Below, piece after piece: positions 1-9,874 of a stretch of DNA of 10,483 nt (its first letter is position 1; each line of letters starts with the position of its first letter). The DNA is from Chlorokybus atmophyticus. Taxonomy: Eukaryota > Plantae > Mesostigma and Chlorokybus algae. The position numbers and the translations under genes are program-made. The stretch is from assembly GCA_009103225.1 (NCBI GenBank), contig RHPI01002990.1, forward strand, positions 483,203-493,685, in the 5' to 3' direction. The notes under the pieces are model-generated. The model worked only from the letters and a program-made list of their open reading frames with translations. It searched no databases and was not told where the DNA came from.

Positions 1-21
1 GGGGGGAGGGGGGTAACACAC

Positions 22-2208
22 CTGAACGTAGCAGATGACAGTAGCAGAGTATGCACAGGGTGCGATGGATACTCTGCTGCCAGCCCAGACACCGCATCTT
101 GAACCACAACTTTGCCTAGGTATGCTAACAGTTCAGTTACACTCAACATCGAAGTCTTGGCGTTGGGACCCATGTCATTTACAGTTTGCTGAAGAACTGG
201 CAGGAAAGGGAACACGACATGTATAAGCTCAATGGGAACGTCCACCATGAAGCGCGCACTCCAAAAGAGTCCAAAGTCTTTTTGGGCGGCGCCTGGCCAG
301 CCGGCTGCACCCAACAACCCTTCCGGACCAAAAAACTTCATGTAGCTTTTATGCATAGCATCAAAGCACCATTTGCCCATTCGTGCAATTTCCTGTAACA
401 ACACAGTGTTGGCGCGCACATTACTTGCGTTCAGTATTCGAATTCTAACCGATACGTGCTTACCTTCTCATTGATGCCTCTGTTGTCCATGAATTGCGCT
501 CCGGCTACACGGAAGGCGTGTGTGACTTTCTTAATGTCAATGCCCAAGGCCTTACATCTGGTCTTGATGGATTTGTAGTGCTGCTCGTACGAGATAGTTT
601 GGTCCGGCTGTTGACAAGAGAAACAACCGCTAAGTGTTGTATGTGCCATGCTGCTGAGTGGAGCAGCATTGCACCATGCGATGCATCTTACTTGAGCTCC
701 AAACCATAATGCGGTCTTATTCCATTCATCTTTCACGCGAGGATCGGGAAACCGTTCACCATTAATAGCAAATCGATGTGAGAGTAGGCGTCCTAAGGAG
801 CCTTGTGGACACTCGACAGGATTTCTAGAGCGGATGCAACCCGCGAAACTGACTTGACCGTTTTTAAGTGTCTTCCCTCCGCTCAGCACCGCATAGACAA
901 GTATGCATGGTGAAGGACCTGCGTTGACAACATATTGTTACAAGCTAGCACTGGCACTACCTAGCATAGCGTGTGACTAAAACCATGCGCGTGTGTGTGT
1001 GCGCGCGCGTGTATGTGCACGGTGTAATTAACACCATGTCCGCGTGTGTGTGCAAGCGTGTGTAGGTGCAAGAGTGGTGGTGGGTTTACATACCTATGTT
1101 TTCCACGACTTGTGGAGGACACAAGTCTAGCAAGTAGACTGCTCTCCCTTCCGTTGAGCGCCCAATGCAACTCGTAAGCCACGTTGACATGGAGTGATCT
1201 CGCGACGCAGGCAAGGACGGGTCTGCCAACATGCTAGTGGCTAGGCTAAGCCATTGTTGAATGGTGAAAGTCGCGTTTACAATGCCATCTTGCGGATCGT
1301 CAGAAGAATCTGGCCGTTGCCCTTTTTGCGCAACCGAATCTTTTGCGGTTTGATACACCATCCGATACCCGACGTGCTGGACAAGTTGAGCACGCTCCCA
1401 AAGGTCTGGTGTGAATGATAGGTTTGCACGGGCTCCAACTTGTTGATGGGCGTAATGACTCTGCAACATTGAGTGGCAAGACTCCACAATACTTAGTTTC
1501 TGCACAGACAATGACAATTCGTGCACATGAGCAACATGAGCAACATGTCAGTTGCCAAGATATACCATCAAATATGTACCAGCACTTTGGCCTTGCGAGG
1601 ATAGTCATAACCAGGCATGTTGGATGTTACCCATTGCATGAAACGCATGGCCAACTTAGCCCCCTCTTCCCCTGCTAGGATGTCATCAATTGGAGCAGCA
1701 CGTGGCAAGCTTGTAGCAGGATCATGGTTGAGGAACCACTCAAACTTCTTGTGATGTTGATTGTAAGAGCGTGTGGAATTGGGTCGCATCGTGTTCCTTC
1801 GATTCTTTGACACCATGTTGTAAAACTCTGCTGGCGCTCTGCATGCATGCCAGTTCATAAACGTCACCAATGAATGGAGTGATGGGATAGCCTCTGCAAG
1901 CAGCAACTCACGTTGATGTGAGCGCATGTCTCGTCCTAGCTTGATCTCGTAGCTTTCCATGCTTTGCTTGATTCCCAGCTGCCACAGCGGCATTTGTTTG
2001 CTCTGCAGCGCCCCATTGCTGACGTTCACATTCCATTTGGCAAGACCTATCAAATACAACATTGAAGTGAGCAATGAACAACACGCGAGCACTAACCATG
2101 CATTATGCACCTGAGTGTTGCTGGCTGCTGTCGACCATGATTTTGTTGATGCAATGCACCATCATCGGCATCAGAGTCCCAATCCTCGATCTGTCCATCA
2201 ACCTCCAT
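22..2208 (-). CDS. CryptonF-like tyrosine recombinase (Ndc10 domain II-type), multi-exon, 3'-partial at the window edge
   Basis: Hand-spliced exons (-): 2208-2111, 2046-1912, 1838-1580 (alternative donor at 1586), 1499-1094, 918-692, 607-464, 392-22. All introns are GT..AG with matching phases (64, 73, 80, 175, 84, 71 nt); another GT donor starts at 21. This gives ~546 stop-free codons. Motifs: RPNSTRSYNQHHKKFEWF; CIGRSTEGR (R at 1158-1160); ENIGPSPCILVYAVLSGGKTLKNGQVSFAGCIRSRNPVECPQGSLG (K at 872-874); KKVTHAFRVAGA (H 518-520, R 509-511); EIARMGKW (W 369-371); MHKSY (Y 342-344); YLGKVVVQDAV..YPSHPV. The pattern matches my recollection of fungal CryptonF/Ndc10-II proteins. The two 5' exons and the start (2208 or 2229) are less certain than the catalytic core. 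Confidence 0.88.
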
Positions 2209-2419
2209 GTTCGATAACTCACACCCCATTAGAATGCGCCCATGCCTGCCTGCCTGTTCATGCGTGCGTGTGTACGTTTGTGCCTAAAGATACATAAGTG
2301 ACATTGGACGCTGCATGACTAGCACATTGCATGCGTGCATCACAGTGTATTTGCAAGCAAGCTACGACTATGTGTGGGTACAATTGGTACGCTACTGCAG
2401 GCGCTGCGCGTAGGTGGCG

Positions 2420-2590
2420 TGTGGGGCTGGGGTGGAGGGGAGAGGGGGATAAAGATTGCAACTGTATGAAATTTGTTTGAAAGCAAGCTCTGCCTGTATG
2501 GCCTGTGGGGCTGGGGTGGTGGGTGGAGGTGCGATAAAGACTGCAATTGTATGTCTGATACAAGGTGTCTTGAAGCAGCTCTGCCTATAT
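2420..2590. repeat. Degenerate ~85-90 bp tandem duplication containing a G-quadruplex motif
   Basis: tgtggggctggggtgg at 2420 and 2504; gataaaga(t/c)tgcaa(c/t)tgtatg at 2448 and 2533; aagc(a)agctctgcct at 2481 and 2573. Four G-runs at 2423-2448. Confidence 0.8.
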
Positions 2591-2652
2591 ATTCAGTTCA
2601 GCCAGTAATGCACATATGCGTGGCGCATGTGTGCGTCACAATGTCCATATCT

Positions 2653-3020
2653 GGAAGCAAGCTTCGTATGCTGCATGCAACTATGTGCTGGCTTGGCTGC
2701 TCAATGCGCATGTCAAAGCTAGGTTGTTGTGTGCATGCACTTGCGTTATTGCGTTAGTTTCAACTTGATCTCTATCGCATGCAGACAATGTCCAAGCCAG
2801 TATGTAAGTGAGCAATCAAAGGCTTAATGACAAAGCTAGACTTAAACACTGCACATAATTGGAAGCCAGTTTCGTATGCACTTGCAGCTATGTGCTGGCT
2901 TGGCTGCTGAATGTGCGTGTGCATACACTGGCACGCATAAGATTCAACTTCAGTCTCTATGGCATGCACACAATGTGCCAGTCAGTAAGTCAATATAAAG
3001 TGAGCAAACAAAGGCTTCAT
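2653..3020. repeat. Degenerate ~185-208 bp tandem duplication
   Basis: Exact 21-mer ctatgtgctggcttggctgct at 2681 and 2888; ggaagc at 2653/2861; ttcaactt at 2759/2943; aagtgagcaa at 2806/2998; aaaggctt at 2818/3010. Confidence 0.8.
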
Positions 3021-3349
3021 ATAGGCAAGGGGTACAAGCTCTTGTTACGCCTAGTCCTATCTGCTACTAAGCGAGGTTGCTAAGACAGCACCTTGCATGC
3101 GCTTGCATGACTCCTTGACTGCTTCTGCTAAAACAACCTGCCGACATACCTCGTGCCCTCTAGCAGGCGCCTGCCCCCGTCACTGCCGCCAGTGCCCTGT
3201 TGTCGCGGACGTTGCCAATGGCGGGCTAACCACTCACACTACCCACCACCTCCGCCCTTGGCCAATCGCCACTTCCACAAACATCCTGCTGCCGCCGTCG
3301 CCCGCAACTCCCACCGCCGCCACCTGCCGCCGTCGCCGCCGTGGCCTGC

Positions 3350-3376
3350 TTAAGCCACGTAGCCGCCGTGGCTTAA
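3350..3376. repeat. Perfect 10-bp inverted repeat with 7-bp asymmetric spacer
   Basis: ttaagccacg (3350-3359) + tagccgc + cgtggcttaa (3367-3376); the arms are exact reverse complements. Confidence refers to the repeat, not to a function. Confidence 0.9.
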
Positions 3377-3486
3377 AGTTTGCGTCAGCGCCAGCGTCAG
3401 CGTCACGGCCGCGCGCTGCGTGTGACGATGACGATGACTAGCGTCATTAGATGACGGGCGTGCTCGAGGCGTATACTGGATACGAT

Positions 3487-3678
3487 ACACGGTCTGACCG
3501 TGTCGCGGTTAATGAACCGCGACCTCAAAAAAGTTTTCGAGGTCGCGGCGGGCCGGGCCAAGATAAGCGGGTCCGCGCCCAAGATAAGCGGGCCCCAGGC
3601 AAAACGCCCGGGGCTGGCCGCGACTTATCTCTCTACTTATCTTCCCGGAGGACAAAGCGCCTAGGAGGCGTGTCCTCC
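3487..3678. repeat. Cluster of overlapping inverted repeats and short direct repeats
   Basis: acacggtc/gaccgtgt (3487-3503); gtcgcggtt/aaccgcgac (3502-3523); ccgcgacctc/gaggtcgcgg (3517-3548); ccaagataagcggg x2 (3558, 3579); cttatct x2 (3624, 3636); ggaggac/gtcctcc (3647-3678) enclosing cgcct/aggcg. Confidence 0.85.
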
Positions 3679-3776
3679 CACCGTCCTCTCCGCGCTGCGC
3701 GCGCGTCCTCCCAGTAAAGATATTCTCTACACATCATGCATCACGCAACTCGCAATTTGTGTACCGGTAATTGTGT

Positions 3777-3896
3777 GTGCACCGATACAGTGCACCGATA
3801 CCGATAATCTCACTTGCCCCATCCCCAACATTGTTGATACGTTGACAAATGCGTCGACGTCGACGCTCGGATAAGTCGCGTGTCGCCAACCCTAAA
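3777..3896 (+). promoter_or_regulatory. Candidate upstream elements of the S17 gene
   Basis: gtgcaccgatac x2 (3777, 3790); perfect 16-bp palindrome gcgtcgacgtcgacgc (3851-3866); telo-box-like aaccctaaa (3888-3896) about 80 nt before the ATG. Function is not demonstrable from sequence. Confidence 0.3.
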
Positions 3897-3974
3897 AGCA
3901 GTGGCATTCGCTGGGTGTTGCTGGCGGCGGCGGCGGCAGCGTTGGGGTTGTAGCTGGTGACGGCGGCAGCAGCA

Positions 3975-4697
3975 ATGGCATCGGCGGGGTTGAGGATAGG
4001 ATCATCAGTGAGCGCCTCGTCGCTGGCCTCTGTCCAGCGATGCGACTTGGGCGCGGCGGCGGGGCCGTCCAGGCCGCAGGCAGCAGGAGCAGCCGCCCCC
4101 TGCTGGAGGGCCCCCGTGGTTATGGCCAAGGCTCTCCAGGGAAGAGTCGTGGGAACCAAGGCTTCCAAGACAGCCGTCGTGGAGGTCACGCGCATCTATG
4201 AGCACCCCCGCTACAGGAAGAAGGTAGGCGCTACCTATTCTTACCACACTGTCCCCTCTGTGGCCAATTGTACTTGTACAAAGGACTGTGTTGGTCGTGA
4301 ACAGGCACATTGGCCATGAGTATTACACCCTACATTCCATGTGATTACCGTTGCTTGCCTTGCTCAATTCACTTATAGCTACTTGCTAACCGTTGTCTAT
4401 CTTCGTCAAGTATGGGGTCTTGCAGCAACGCTGATGTTGGCAATTACCATTAGCGATTACTCACGTAGACACGATGGTGCTGATCAAAGCTGAATTATGA
4501 TTGATATGTGCGTTCCTCTCCAGATACGCACTTCGCACAAGTACGCCGTGCATGATGAGACCGAGGAGGCCACCGTCGGTGACTTCGTGCAGATCATCCC
4601 TATTGCGCCCAAGTCCAAGACAAAGACCTTTGGGCTCGCCAGCATTATCCGCAAGGGTCGTATGCTTCCCGGCTCAGACATCCTCGTTGTCGAATAA
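3975..4697 (+). CDS. PRPS17: Nuclear-encoded bacterial-type ribosomal protein uS17, probably plastid-targeted; 2 exons, 140 aa
   Basis: Exons 3975-4223 and 4524-4697, with a 300-nt phase-0 GT..AG intron. Mature part: AKALQGRVVGTKASKTAVVEVTRIYEHPRYRKK|IRTSHKYAVHDETEEATVGDFVQIIPIAPKSKTKTFGLASII, a clear uS17 pattern. The ~50-aa Ser/Ala-rich N-terminus has only one acidic residue and ends in APVVMA, resembling a chloroplast transit peptide. Family call is strong; plastid versus mitochondrial targeting is inference. Confidence 0.92.
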
Positions 4698-4701
4698 GCA
4701 T

Positions 4702-4784
4702 GTAAGTCTCCTTGATTACCTGCCTTCATCCCTTGCCATGTTTTCTTGTTTACCCACACCTTGACACAACACAACTTGCGACAG
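4702..4784 (+). other. Possible 83-nt intron in the S17 3' UTR
   Basis: gtaagt donor 5 nt after the TAA; acag acceptor ending at 4784; length matches other short introns in the window. Confidence 0.4.
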
Positions 4785-6006
4785 GATGCTACTTCACAAT
4801 ATGCTGCTAGGAGTGGACTTGGCAGCAACCAGCACCTGTGTCGCACGTGGCTGACCTGAAGTTGTTACTTGTCTGCTGGCTAGCCTTGTGTTCCTGAGCT
4901 ATGCTAATTGCACTGCAACACTCTGCTCCAGTTGCCAGCTTATTGACTGCTGCTGTTATATATTTTGCTGCGCCACTGCGGCGTGAGGATTCAAAATCTG
5001 TCATTGCTGCCAGAGAGTATGCACTGGTGTGGCCTTGTTGTCGTTACGGCCTTGGGCACTGCATCTGTTGCTGTTGCTTGCGGCCATAGTGGTGTTTTGT
5101 TTCTAGACATAATTTCTGAGGTGATACTTTTCTTTTTACACGGTAGTTATCGGTGTGTGTCTGACACTTATACTAACAGTTGGTTTTGAGAAAGCAATCT
5201 GGCAAAAAAGCAGACACCAGACAGAGCTATGATCTGCTCAAGTTTCAGTAAAGAGGTGGTGACTATAACAGCAGATGCAGCCACAACCATTGCATGCAAG
5301 TTATAGCCGTCTCAAGGCATGTAGCCTGCATTCAAGTGGACTGTGTGTAGAAGGTGCACATGTCATTCCACTTGCAAGGCCTTTGGGTGCTTAGTAATGT
5401 AGGCAAAGTCAACTGCTTGGCAGGAACATGAGCATGCTTGTGTGCGTGGGTGTGGGCGTGCACATGTGTGCGTCTGCGCATGTGTAGAATATATGCAATA
5501 CGGTGTGTCTGCAAAGCACGTGCATTCACTGAGACTGCCACCCCCATACGCGCACTATCGCGTGGCTGGCAGTCTCAGCAGTTGCACACAGAAACTGTCA
5601 GAGATGCCAGCAAGCCTATACAGCCACATCCATCTAGCACGACCATCAACCATAATGTGTAGGTTTGTGCGCTGTGTGGTCCTCATTGTTCGGAATGCAG
5701 TGGAGGAGAGCGAACCCGCGTGATATATCAGCGCTGATGTAAGCTGCTGTTGGTGCGAGCATGCGTGCTCTTGAGAGACCATTCACGCTCATTCCAAAGG
5801 TTCTTGCATCGTGCATCGCAATCAGTATTTCACATGTATGAATCTAAATCCTATGGGTGTGTCGTTGCTGCCTGGCTTTCCACATGTGAGCATACAGCCA
5901 AGCTCGTCACAACAGTTCATGACAACAGCATACGGCAAAAGTTGTGCACATCTTGTCCTGGCCAGACAAACTAGCCGCACAACCCTCTTGCTCTCACACG
6001 TCGTTG

Positions 6007-6867
6007 CTAAAGACGTCCCCCGCGCCCGCCCTCACGCTCGTCGTCAAAGTACTTGGTGTGCTTGTCCTTGCCCTCCATCCGCTTCAGCGTGTAGTCCCCA
6101 TCATAGCAGGTCTCCGTGCGGCAGATCTCACCCTGTGTGCGCGTGCATGAGTGTGTGTCAAATCCCACTTCGTCACACAGGCTAAGTGTCTGATGAAGGT
6201 GGTACCAAAAGTCTCATGTTCCCGCCCACAGTGAATCCAATAGTGGACTCGTTCACCATCGCACCCTCCTTGATATCTGGAGACAGACGTGTGCGTGTGC
6301 GTGTAACAGTGTGTATGTGCGTGCCTTCAGTGGTAAAGAGCAGCACAGGGTGTGGCTTACGACATGTTGAAGGGCTGCATGACAATGTGCCACTCCTTGA
6401 CAAAATCCTGAAGAGCTTTGCGGCCCTTGATGGGCTCACTCTTCGGGGTCAACGGCTGCATCGCTGCACATCAATGAAAATTTTGTCACGACAACAGAAT
6501 GTCCAATCAAGATTGAACATTCTTTTGTCGTCACAAACTTTTCTTGAACTGATGCACGTGGTTTGAGCTCCCAACAGAGGTGGTTTTGTGTGTGCGTGTG
6601 TGTGAATGCATGCGTGCTTTGCAATTGAGAACACACTCACAGATGAAGTCCTCTGAGAGTAGGCGGTCAAGGTCCTTCACGCTGCGGGTGCCGACCCACA
6701 CCATCGCGTAGTCGCGCACGCTATCCGGGGTGTGTCTCGCCTGCAATGACACCAACATGCAAGTCTCATGTTGCCATCCAGCCAGTATGTCACATGCAAG
6801 CCACACATAACAAAACATGCCCCTCCTTGTGTGCAGTGTCTGATACCTTCATCTCCCCCTTGTGCAT
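6007..6867 (-). CDS. Small multi-exon protein, probable SnoaL-like/NTF2-fold (paralog A, ~149 aa)
   Basis: Candidate exons (-): 6867-6847, 6740-6641, 6463-6361, 6276-6177, 6132-6007. Translation: MHKGEMK|ARHTPDSVRDYAMVWVGTRSVKDLDRLLSEDFI|SMQPLTPKSEPIKGRKALQDFVKEWHIVMQPFNM|SYQGGCDGERVHYWIHCGREHETFGTTFIRHLAC|GEICRTETCYDGDYTLKRMEGKDKHTKYFDDEREGGRGGRL. Coding status is supported by synonymous-biased divergence from paralog B. DLDRLLSEDF..P....PIKGRKAL..F, DGERV and GEI......D resemble SnoaL-like domains. The start codon and the last intron (only 44 nt) are uncertain. Confidence 0.6.
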
Positions 6868-6928
6868 TTCCGCGTAACCTTACATCGGATGAGTGTTCAT
6901 CCTGAGGTGGGCACACAAGCAGAAATTG

Positions 6929-7225: not shown

Positions 7226-7901
7226 CATAATCTTTGCAGTTGTGTAGCACGCATAAGCACCTGGCTGATGCATTGTGTTGTATGTCACATGCACCGAACT
7301 CGTCATGATGTTTCCCTGATCGGGTTGCGAAGGGTGTGACTGTGTGCGATTATTTGAACGTTTGGGCAGATGCGGCCTGTGCTTCTTCTGTTTGGTCCTA
7401 TCGCATGTCCCACAGGCTGATGCTGACTCCTCCTTTGTGCAAGTCCCATCACTCCTCCTTACTGTACTGACCTTGCCACGGTAAGCATATTGAACCTTGA
7501 ACGCTAAAGTGAGTACACATGATGGGGCTGCACTGCTGGAGTAATTTGCACGTCAGCTTGTGTGGTGATGCATGTAGTCAAGCGTCACAGGCCACTAACA
7601 AGAAACTGATATCTCGTGAATAGTCTTACACCGGACAGCCTATGCACACTCTACATCTTTCTGCCCCTGTGTATAGCTGCTCGTATACCAGCCTGTACAG
7701 TCCGTGCGATGTATATACACACTTTTGCTCCACTAAAATGCCCTTGTCATCCACATCCACAGGCGGTAATGCATACATATAATTGTGGTCTAAGCAGAGG
7801 GCAGAGAGGGTGAGAGCGAGTATGACAGGGCTGTGCTGGTATCTCTCCTGCTTACGTACGGTCCCAGGATGAACACTCCTCAGATGCACGGCTTTACTGA
7901 G

Positions 7902-8828
7902 ATGCGCAAGGCGGGGCGAGTTCAAAGTATGCATTGGCAAGAGGAGTTGTTGCTTTGCATGGCTAAGGCACTGTGTGCAGTTACGCCATCTCATGCACAT
8001 GGCCACTTGTACCACGCTCTCACATCAACGTACATTTGCGTGCACGCAGGCTCGCCACACCCCGGACAACGTGCATGACTACGTGATGGTGTGGGTCGGT
8101 ACCCGCAGCGTGCAGGACCTCGACCGCATACTCTCAGAGGACTTCATCTGTGAGAATGCGTCTGTCCACGTGTTGTATACAAAACCACTCACATATGTGT
8201 GTGTGTGTGTGTGTGTGTGTTGTGGTAGCGATGCAGCCTGTGGCCCCCAAGACTGAGCCAATCAAGGGCCGCAAAGCCCTGCAGGACTTGATCCAAGCAT
8301 GGCACCATGTCCTCCAGCCCTTCAACGCATTGTAAGCAGCAGCAGTTGAGTATTCACTACTGCCTAGTTGCCACCCACCCACCCACATATGTGTAGGTAC
8401 GCGATCATGGAGGGTCCGATGGCGAACGAGTCCATGCACTGGTGGACTCTGCGCGAGCGCGGAAGGTGATGAACGACTTCCGCGGGGTCAAAGCATCCAG
8501 GGGTTGGGTCACTATACAGTGCAGCAGGCTGCGAGAAACACACCTTCAAGGAACGAGTGAGAGCTACGTGATGAACAAACAGACCAAAACTGCGAGTCAT
8601 AGAGAAATGCACACAGAGATACATACACATGCACACACGCAGGGGGAGATCTGTCGCACGGAGAATTGTTATGATGGGGGATTACATGCTGAAGCAGATG
8701 CAGGGGGGAAGGTCAAACACCCCAGCTACTTTGATGATGATGATGCGCGAGCACGGGCACGGCCGGGGGTTCTTCAGCAACAATGCTTGACAAATGATCA
8801 CAGAGTGACAACGACATCAACGACTTGA
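7902..8828 (+). pseudogene. Paralog B of the SnoaL/NTF2-like gene, with apparent frameshifts (pseudogene or assembly errors)
   Basis: Exons 8050-8149 (100 nt) and 8229-8331 (103 nt) match paralog A in length and splice phase (ARHTPDNVHDYVMVWVGTRSVQDLDRILSEDFI; SMQPVAPKTEPIKGRKALQDLIQAWHHVLQPFNA). The last exon from 8643 starts GEICRTENCYDG. Frame disruptions relative to A at ~7913-7916, ~8397-8405, 8676-8680 and 8703-8708; A's TAG aligns with CAG. Confidence 0.55.
8196..8220. repeat. (TG)12 microsatellite, intronic in paralog B
   Basis: Direct read; lies between the donor at 8150 and the acceptor at 8228. Confidence 0.9.
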
Positions 8829-9289
8829 CATTGTGCGTGTGTACAAAAGATGGAGTGCTGATAAGACCGCATGCAAGGGGTCATAAGCATGAGACATGCA
8901 TGTAGTCATGCACACGCCGCAAGCAAACAGTCAGCAGCAGTCGCAGTGCTATTTCACCACCGGGCTAGGTACTTCTAACGCACTCAACTACCACCACTTG
9001 GCTACGCCGTTAGTCATGCGTGCATGCATGTATGTATGTTCCATTATCACCTGCCCACACGGGCTGCTGTTAGTCCCTGGTGTCAACGGGCAGCATGGCA
9101 ATCACAACGACGACGACTCCCTCCCTTTCGTTCTCCCTCTTCCCCGCCACTCTCTGCATCTCGCCGCTCATGCCGCGGCCCTGGCTGCCACTCTACCCTA
9201 ACCCTCGCTGCGTGCTGCCTACGTCAGCACTGCACGCGCAGGGCCGTTCGGGTGGCAGCTGTTCTGCTGGTAGATTGGTGTCATTGGCA

Positions 9290-9874
9290 GTTCGGTGGTG
9301 CTGGCAGTTAAGTGCTGGTGGTTGGGTTGGGTGGTTGGGTTGGGCGCTCACGCCCTGGGCACGGGCAAGCTGCGTTACCATGCAGCTTGCTCCCCGTGCA
9401 TGCTCACTGTCCAGTCCGCCGGCTCCGCACTTGCTGGCCAGCATGTGGTCGGTACGCTCTGCAGTTGGCAGCAGCAGCAGCGTCAAGCCCAAGTTGCACG
9501 GTCGTGCAGCGGTATGCGAGTACGAGCGTGAGCATGCAGCGTGTGAATGCGCCCTCTCCTCTCCCTCCCCCTCCTCCTCTCCCTCCCCTCTCTCTCCCCT
9601 CCTCCTCCCCCGCCCTTCTCTCTCTTCTATCGCCACGTCCGTCTCCCTTGCTGGCGACGCAGCAACCCTTGTTGCTGTGCGAGGGAGGGCCCCTCTGCCC
9701 CTCCCCTCTGCTGTCCTGTCTCCTTGGGTGCGTAGTGCCAGTCCGCATTGCATGCAGTAGTAGCGGCGCTGTCGGTGGCGGTTAGGTATTGCTGGTGGGG
9801 TTGGGTGGTGGGGTTGGGTGTTGGTATCTTCGGCACGGGCAAGCTCGATTACCAGTCAGCCTGCTCCCCGCGCA
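9290..9874. repeat. Degenerate direct duplication (~474-bp offset) with G4 motifs and a hairpin, separated by a CT-rich tract
   Basis: tgctggtg..gttgggtggt.gggttggg..ggcacgggcaagct...ttacca..cagc.tgctccccg.gca occurs at ~9313-9400 and ~9790-9874. A pyrimidine tract lies at ~9551-9630. Confidence 0.8.

Follow-up and report, generated by a model that had tools for sequence, protein, structure and literature searches.

An intron-split tyrosine recombinase gene of the CryptonF/Ndc10 lineage in a probable multi-copy transposon of the green alga Chlorokybus atmophyticus

The stretch of Chlorokybus atmophyticus DNA analysed here (10,483 nucleotides, hereafter the window) raises the question of whether fragments of open reading frame on the minus strand at its left end belong to one tyrosine recombinase gene and, if so, whether that gene belongs to a transposon, to the host or to a relic. 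Among eukaryotic DNA transposons, Cryptons form a rare class that has received little study; they have no TIRs or LTRs and carry at both termini short direct repeats (4-6 bp) that match the target. The first-pass annotation had proposed that GT-AG introns of consistent phase join the fragments, together with an exon at 392-22 missing from the list of open reading frames, into a spliced reading frame of approximately 546 codons. The gene was rebuilt from the sequence as exons E1 to E6, each of which was translated and searched singly rather than joined to the others:

2208-2097, minus strand: putative exon E1 with ATG at 2208, then a 50-nt intron (GTTAGT..ATAG, donor at 2096)
2046-1580, minus strand: exon E2, N-terminal region, then an 80-nt intron (GTACAT..GCAG)
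1499-1094, minus strand: exon E3, first catalytic arginine, then a 175-nt intron (GTATGT..GCAG)
918-692, minus strand: exon E4, catalytic lysine, then an 84-nt intron (GTAAGA..ACAG)
691-608, minus strand: the intron after E4 (intron 4; GTAAGA...CAACAG, 84 nt), in frame and stop-free
607-464, minus strand: exon E5, HxxR motif, then a 71-nt intron (GTAAGC..ACAG)
392-22, minus strand: exon E6, tryptophan and nucleophile tyrosine, then a GT donor at 21-20

All of the introns are GT-AG and phase-consistent, and the exons hold no stop codon. With E1 included, the gene within the window comes to 1727 nt, or 575 codons plus 2 nt; if E1 is left out and translation begins instead with the in-frame ATG at 2062, the length is approximately 544 codons, so that the first-pass figure is closely reproduced. 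Because E6 ends at a donor GT (21-20), the predicted gene extends past the left edge of the window and has at least six exons. E1 is phase-consistent with E2 and is optional, in that the ATG at 2062 could begin the protein without it. The exon-wise search of the listed homologs gave no match to E1 or to residues 1-83 of E2, and E1 together with the first 83 residues of E2 is a prediction. The only public run found to hold the window stretch (X1, seen as Logan contigs of low depth and possibly from another strain) is DNA-like, with contigs that cross introns 2, 3 and 5; one of its contigs diverges from the window sequence beyond 2105, which is within E1. The search of public runs found no RNA run containing the stretch, and the splice junctions are therefore judged by homology.

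Four of the five internal junctions (E2/E3, E3/E4, E4/E5 and E5/E6) are backed by alignments to homologs, independently of the splice-site consensus. In a family HMM built from 21 long homologs, to which the exons were mapped one at a time, E3 matches positions 82-155 (E 6e-7), E4 positions 160-232 (E 4e-28), E5 positions 235-281 (E 6e-19) and E6, the exon that the first pass had brought out of hiding, positions 283-393 (E 6e-30), so that E3 to E6 abut in the coordinates of the model without gap or overlap. E2 residues 87-155 match positions 44-118 of proteins from Myrmecia bisecta (E 1e-14), and the E2/E3 junction is residue-exact in one of them (P0092), where E2 residue 155 falls on 118 and E3 residue 1 on 119. 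At the E3/E4 junction, E3 residue 135 falls on 62 of P0022 and on 366 of Coccomyxa viridis g8949, the glycine of the split codon on 63 and 367, and residue 1 of E4 on 64 and 368; E3 aligns to g8949 at 240-366 (E 5e-17). The E4/E5 junction is residue-exact in P0003 (E4 residue 75 on 111, E5 residue 1 on 112), as is the E5/E6 junction in P0092 (E5 residue 48 on 251, E6 residue 1 on 252). E4 is matched by 145 of the 150 listed homologs, and E6 over its full length is 49% identical to P0178. On these alignments, the predicted exon model is far beyond chance.

Since intron 4 is in frame and stop-free, E4, intron 4 and E5 form a continuous open reading frame (916-464), which was used as a query against 1.84 billion representative proteins at E<=1e-3. 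It gave 253 protein matches at that threshold and 50 at <=1e-10, nearly all of them as a pair of aligned segments from which the 28 codons of intron 4 are missing; in the coordinates of the family HMM, E4 ends at position 234 and E5 begins at 235. Retention of intron 4 as coding sequence was considered and rejected for most purposes: the nearest homologs are without an insert, and the few inserts found are dissimilar to intron 4.

CryptonF elements are established in fungi and oomycetes (Kojima & Jurka 2011, PMC3212892), and their architecture is an NDC10_II domain with a GCR1_C domain (PMC3212892). Assignment of the window gene to the NDC10_II (CryptonF/Ndc10) lineage, as the first-pass annotation had claimed, is supported by Pfam, by the family HMM, by the homologs and by a profile match to Ndc10. 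The Pfam family that the annotation had named, NDC10_II (PF16787), is matched by E4 alone at E 8e-5; Pfam searches with E2, E3, E5 and E6 as single exons gave nothing usable. The long homologs are NDC10_II proteins according to Pfam, with E from 1e-10 down to 1e-75, and several of them also have GCR1_C. Both fungal NDC10_II+GCR1_C proteins and green-algal proteins are found among the homologs of the 916-464 reading frame. The fungal members named among the homologs with GCR1_C or strong NDC10_II come from Tilletia (16 members in one 90% cluster), Diaporthe, Circinella and Amoeboaphelidium. Closest among the named relatives are green-algal proteins (Coccomyxa viridis g8949, Myrmecia bisecta and Dunaliella salina), with 36-62% identity exon by exon; Myrmecia bisecta has three paralogs on three contigs. 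A Pfam scan for GCR1_C in the nearest algal relatives (Myrmecia, Dunaliella, Coccomyxa and P0022) found none. A profile of alignment A1, searched against structures, matched Ndc10 at 1e-11 and matched Cre at E ~1e-3 over Cre 289-331, the His-Arg-Trp-Tyr segment; this profile worked where a PDB search with a single open reading frame had returned only chitinase matches, which were judged to be due to chance. In protein collections no near-identical protein was found, the best matches being 46-49% identical (the E6 search had only two matches), so that the gene appears to be unannotated, as had been suspected.

P0022, a relative of 560 aa with 37-45% identity to individual exons, is one uninterrupted open reading frame on Logan contigs of SRR22100208/211/212 (L001-L003), and a short overlapping upstream open reading frame in another frame accompanies it at these loci. 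The uninterrupted frame may be either a spliced transcript or an intron-poor copy.

For the active site, the first-pass annotation had reported R, K, HxxR, W and Y in the expected order. These residues lie at the following positions:

1160-1158, minus strand, E3: catalytic arginine in IGRSTE, on the conserved arginine of the family consensus
874-872, minus strand, E4: catalytic lysine in GGKT, equivalent to K78 of P0022
520-518, minus strand, E5: catalytic histidine in THAFR, equivalent to H168 of P0022
511-509, minus strand, E5: catalytic arginine of HxxR in THAFR, equivalent to R171 of P0022
371-369, minus strand, E6: catalytic tryptophan in GKW, equivalent to W193 of P0022
344-342, minus strand, E6: nucleophile tyrosine in KSY, equivalent to Y202 of P0022

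The catalytic set R...K...HxxR...W...Y is complete in the window gene and occupies conserved family columns throughout: by way of the coordinates that relate each exon to P0022, the lysine, histidine, arginine, tryptophan and tyrosine fall on invariant or nearly invariant columns of alignment A1. Judged by its residues, the enzyme is intact as far as the window encodes it. The catalytic competence that had been proposed thus holds, as a prediction, for this part of the gene, which has an intact active site and no stop codon.

Copy number, which the first-pass annotation had held to distinguish a mobile element from a domesticated gene, was approached through the low-depth contigs of X1. Positions 1-3594 are covered by 26 short contigs, with identity to the window of >=99% for 13, 95-99% for 11 and 90-95% for 2, and contigs with different variants overlap at several of the same places. 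The listed differences number 29 overall, 15 of them C>T or G>A; the 23 that are exonic comprise 5 synonymous and 18 non-synonymous differences, the latter including a change of glutamine to stop at 1445. One contig carries a 200-bp deletion variant in which 905-1104 is replaced by AT, with loss of intron 3 and of the adjoining parts of E3 and E4. The joint of 904 to 1105 was considered as the mark of an intron-less copy and rejected, as it removes 25 exonic bases and adds 2, which shifts the reading frame; the contig represents another copy of the element, reduced by deletion. The overlapping variants, the stop codon and the deletion indicate that repeated copies of the element, diverged from one another, exist in the genome, and the pattern of variants is that expected of neutral, independent decay of repeat copies and not of a conserved host gene. 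The relatives, too, occur in several copies, as three paralogs in Myrmecia and 16 cluster members in Tilletia.

Given this pattern of decaying copies, 1-3594 is read as part of a multi-copy element, and in the reading that we prefer (with a probability of roughly 0.8) this element is a Crypton-type DNA transposon of a green-algal nuclear genome, present in several copies, one of which has its right-hand part here. The alternative that survives best is that the copy in the window is a dead relic, inactivated outside the window or by missense changes, in a family that no longer moves. Such a relic would fit the stop codon and the deletion in other copies, the failure of the search of public runs to find an RNA run holding the stretch, and the richness of the variants in C>T and G>A, which is as in silenced repeats; against it, approximately 540 codons in the window contain no stop or frameshift, every conserved family column that was checked is kept, and the 13 of 26 X1 contigs that are at least 99% identical point to young copies. 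We regard the relic as a real possibility, although we lean against it.

In the DNA upstream of the recombinase gene the following features were found:

2209-3594, no strand: upstream non-coding part of the repeat unit, from X1 contigs and repeats; its end is GC-rich and hairpin-rich
2415-2529 and 2676-2920, in the upstream region: direct repeats spaced 84 bp and 207 bp apart
3350-3376, inside the repeated part of the element: perfect 10-7-10 inverted repeat
3487-3548, inside the repeated part: three adjoining perfect or near-perfect hairpins with stems of 8, 9 and 15 bp
3558-3643: imperfect palindrome of two direct CCAAGATAAGCGGG units facing two inverted ACTTATCT units, with a 7-nt centre at 3600-3606
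3975-4223, plus strand: exon 1 of rps17, the nuclear gene for plastid-type ribosomal protein S17 (Pfam S17, E 4e-5)

X1 contigs cover 1-3594, and there are none on 3601-6000. One contig continues past 3594 with 103 letters that do not match the window at that place and do not occur elsewhere in it. This one low-depth contig, together with the hole in coverage, which by itself is no proof, suggests a right-hand boundary of the element at 3594/3595 or close by, approximately 380 bp upstream of the rps17 start codon. A loose contig end at 3538 was also considered as the boundary and was rejected as a fold-back artefact at a palindrome. In the 1.4 kb between the start codon of the recombinase gene and the boundary there is no convincing open reading frame. 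An X1 contig (3111-3538) spans the inverted repeat at 3350-3376 and matches the window without a difference. The palindrome at 3558-3643 straddles the boundary, and the DNA fold of 3470-3660 has a z of -5.5; shaped like the core site of a tyrosine recombinase, the palindrome is a candidate recombination site. The ratio of observed to expected CpG is 1.39 in 3301-3900 versus 0.4-0.9 elsewhere, which is CpG-island-like and spans both the edge of the element and the region upstream of rps17; as a discriminator between element and flank, the ratio was rejected because it fails to separate them.

Several further observations concern the surroundings of these features. In the repeat region of 2415-2920, an X1 contig joint of 2854 to 2804 is a variant of copy number or arrangement. 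Exon 1 of rps17 encodes a transit-peptide-like N-terminus followed by positions 1-27 of Pfam S17, and has a GT donor at 4224. Farther right is a large inverted duplication (6096-6904 and 7865-8679) that consists of five colinear arm segments, 76-90% complementary, the innermost arms being separated by approximately 960 bp; each arm contains a similar piece of open reading frame with the motif VWVGTRSV.DLDR.LSEDFICE, which has no Pfam match. The region 9080-9785 is GC-rich and of low complexity, with CCTCCC-type repeats and long overlapping open reading frames on both strands that have no Pfam match, and is probably either non-coding simple sequence or a proline/serine-rich exon.

That only one end of the repeat lies in the window leaves room for the gene to belong to a larger or different element, such as a composite Crypton with a C48/Ulp1 peptidase, an element that carries cargo or a retroelement of the DIRS/Ngaro type, and oomycetes have CryptonF elements that include a C48 peptidase (PMC3212892). 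An element of this kind is distinctly unlikely: 1-3594 holds no second gene, and no open reading frame or Pfam match for a reverse transcriptase or RNase H, the mark of DIRS/Ngaro, was found there; recombinases of the NDC10_II type belong to the CryptonF lineage and not to DIRS; and the relatives of the window gene are 500-760 aa single-gene products on short contigs. Least probable is a host gene of the yeast Ndc10/Cbf2 or Gcr1 kind, domesticated from a Crypton and retained to bind DNA or to serve a function in the chromosome, for although five supported exons give an unbroken reading frame, the introns are ordinary and the host gene rps17 adjoins, all of the catalytic residues that known domesticated CryptonF derivatives have lost (PMC3212892) are kept, the several diverged copies show neutral substitutions, a stop codon and a deletion, and no RNA run holding the stretch was found. 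The element in the window is a transposon copy, not a domesticated gene.

As a transposon copy, the element may be expected to move in the way described by the Crypton model and by analogy to CryptonF-1_cRei of Chlamydomonas reinhardtii. The tyrosine recombinase encoded by the minus-strand gene, which belongs to the NDC10_II lineage and has all of the R-K-HxxR-W-Y residues, would cut and rejoin DNA via a 3'-phosphotyrosine intermediate; the element would be excised by recombination between the short repeats at its ends and would be re-inserted at a short look-alike target. The sequence and the contigs bear out the exon structure, the family assignment, the active-site residues, the presence of diverged copies and one repeat boundary; mobility by this mechanism is inferred, the palindrome is a putative recombination site, and the copy in the window may be complete and active.

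A bolder version of the transposon reading, which we think rather unlikely, is that a young and still mobile CryptonF-like lineage exists on the streptophyte (land-plant) side of the green algae and plants and that the palindrome, with its AAGATAAG-type arms, two on each side of 3600-3606, is the core site of its recombinase. If this were true, the locus would provide a defined pair of recombinase and site for direct tests of the poorly understood integration and excision of Cryptons.

In the searchable literature no paper was found that links Cryptons with Chlorokybus, and the titles and abstracts of the literature found describe no Crypton in streptophyte algae. To our knowledge, Chlamydomonas is so far the only host in which Cryptons have been seen to be active. 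The occurrence of a family with intact catalytic residues in the earliest-branching lineage of streptophytes, and of close relatives in Trebouxiophyceae and Chlorophyceae, would point to CryptonF-like elements as long established in the green lineage and not as a speciality of fungi or oomycetes. For annotation, the point is that genes of this kind are missed by tracks of open reading frames and are apparently absent from protein collections. To the specialist, the recombinase gene is useful rather than surprising.

Fungal CryptonF elements, reportedly described by Goodwin et al. in 2003, have a recombinase domain homologous to that of the window gene, with single exons matching such proteins (e.g., those of Tilletia) at 1e-5 to 1e-9, and share its catalytic motifs, its possession of introns and its multi-copy state; they differ in that the fungal proteins have a C-terminal GCR1_C, the corresponding region of the window gene lying beyond the window, and in that identity is only approximately 35%. 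Domain II of Ndc10/Cbf2, the subunit of the yeast CBF3 kinetochore complex, belongs to the same Pfam family (PF16787), but Ndc10 is domesticated, catalytically dead and single-copy, whereas the window gene has the full active site and is multi-copy. With Cre, the predicted enzyme has its chemistry in common, including the tryptophan that replaces the second histidine; the two are distantly related, with different N-terminal domains, and the window gene is a eukaryotic transposon gene with introns.

Among the closest known systems is CryptonF-1_cRei, which bears out the mention in the first-pass annotation of a CryptonF in Chlamydomonas reinhardtii: it has been published as an active, autonomous tyrosine-recombinase element (Lopez-Cortegano et al. 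2023, PMC9977147) whose terminus is CACCG and whose target is CAYCG, and it was the most active transposon in a Chlamydomonas mutation-accumulation strain (PMC9977147). Its host is a chlorophyte and its activity has been shown, whereas the host of the window element is reported to be a streptophyte, and the two are likened here by description and not by sequence. Both are green-algal elements of the CryptonF type, and the preference of CryptonF-1_cRei for insertion into gene-proximal intergenic DNA and 5' UTRs (PMC9977147) has a counterpart in the copy in the window, which is likewise gene-proximal, approximately 380 bp upstream of the start of rps17.
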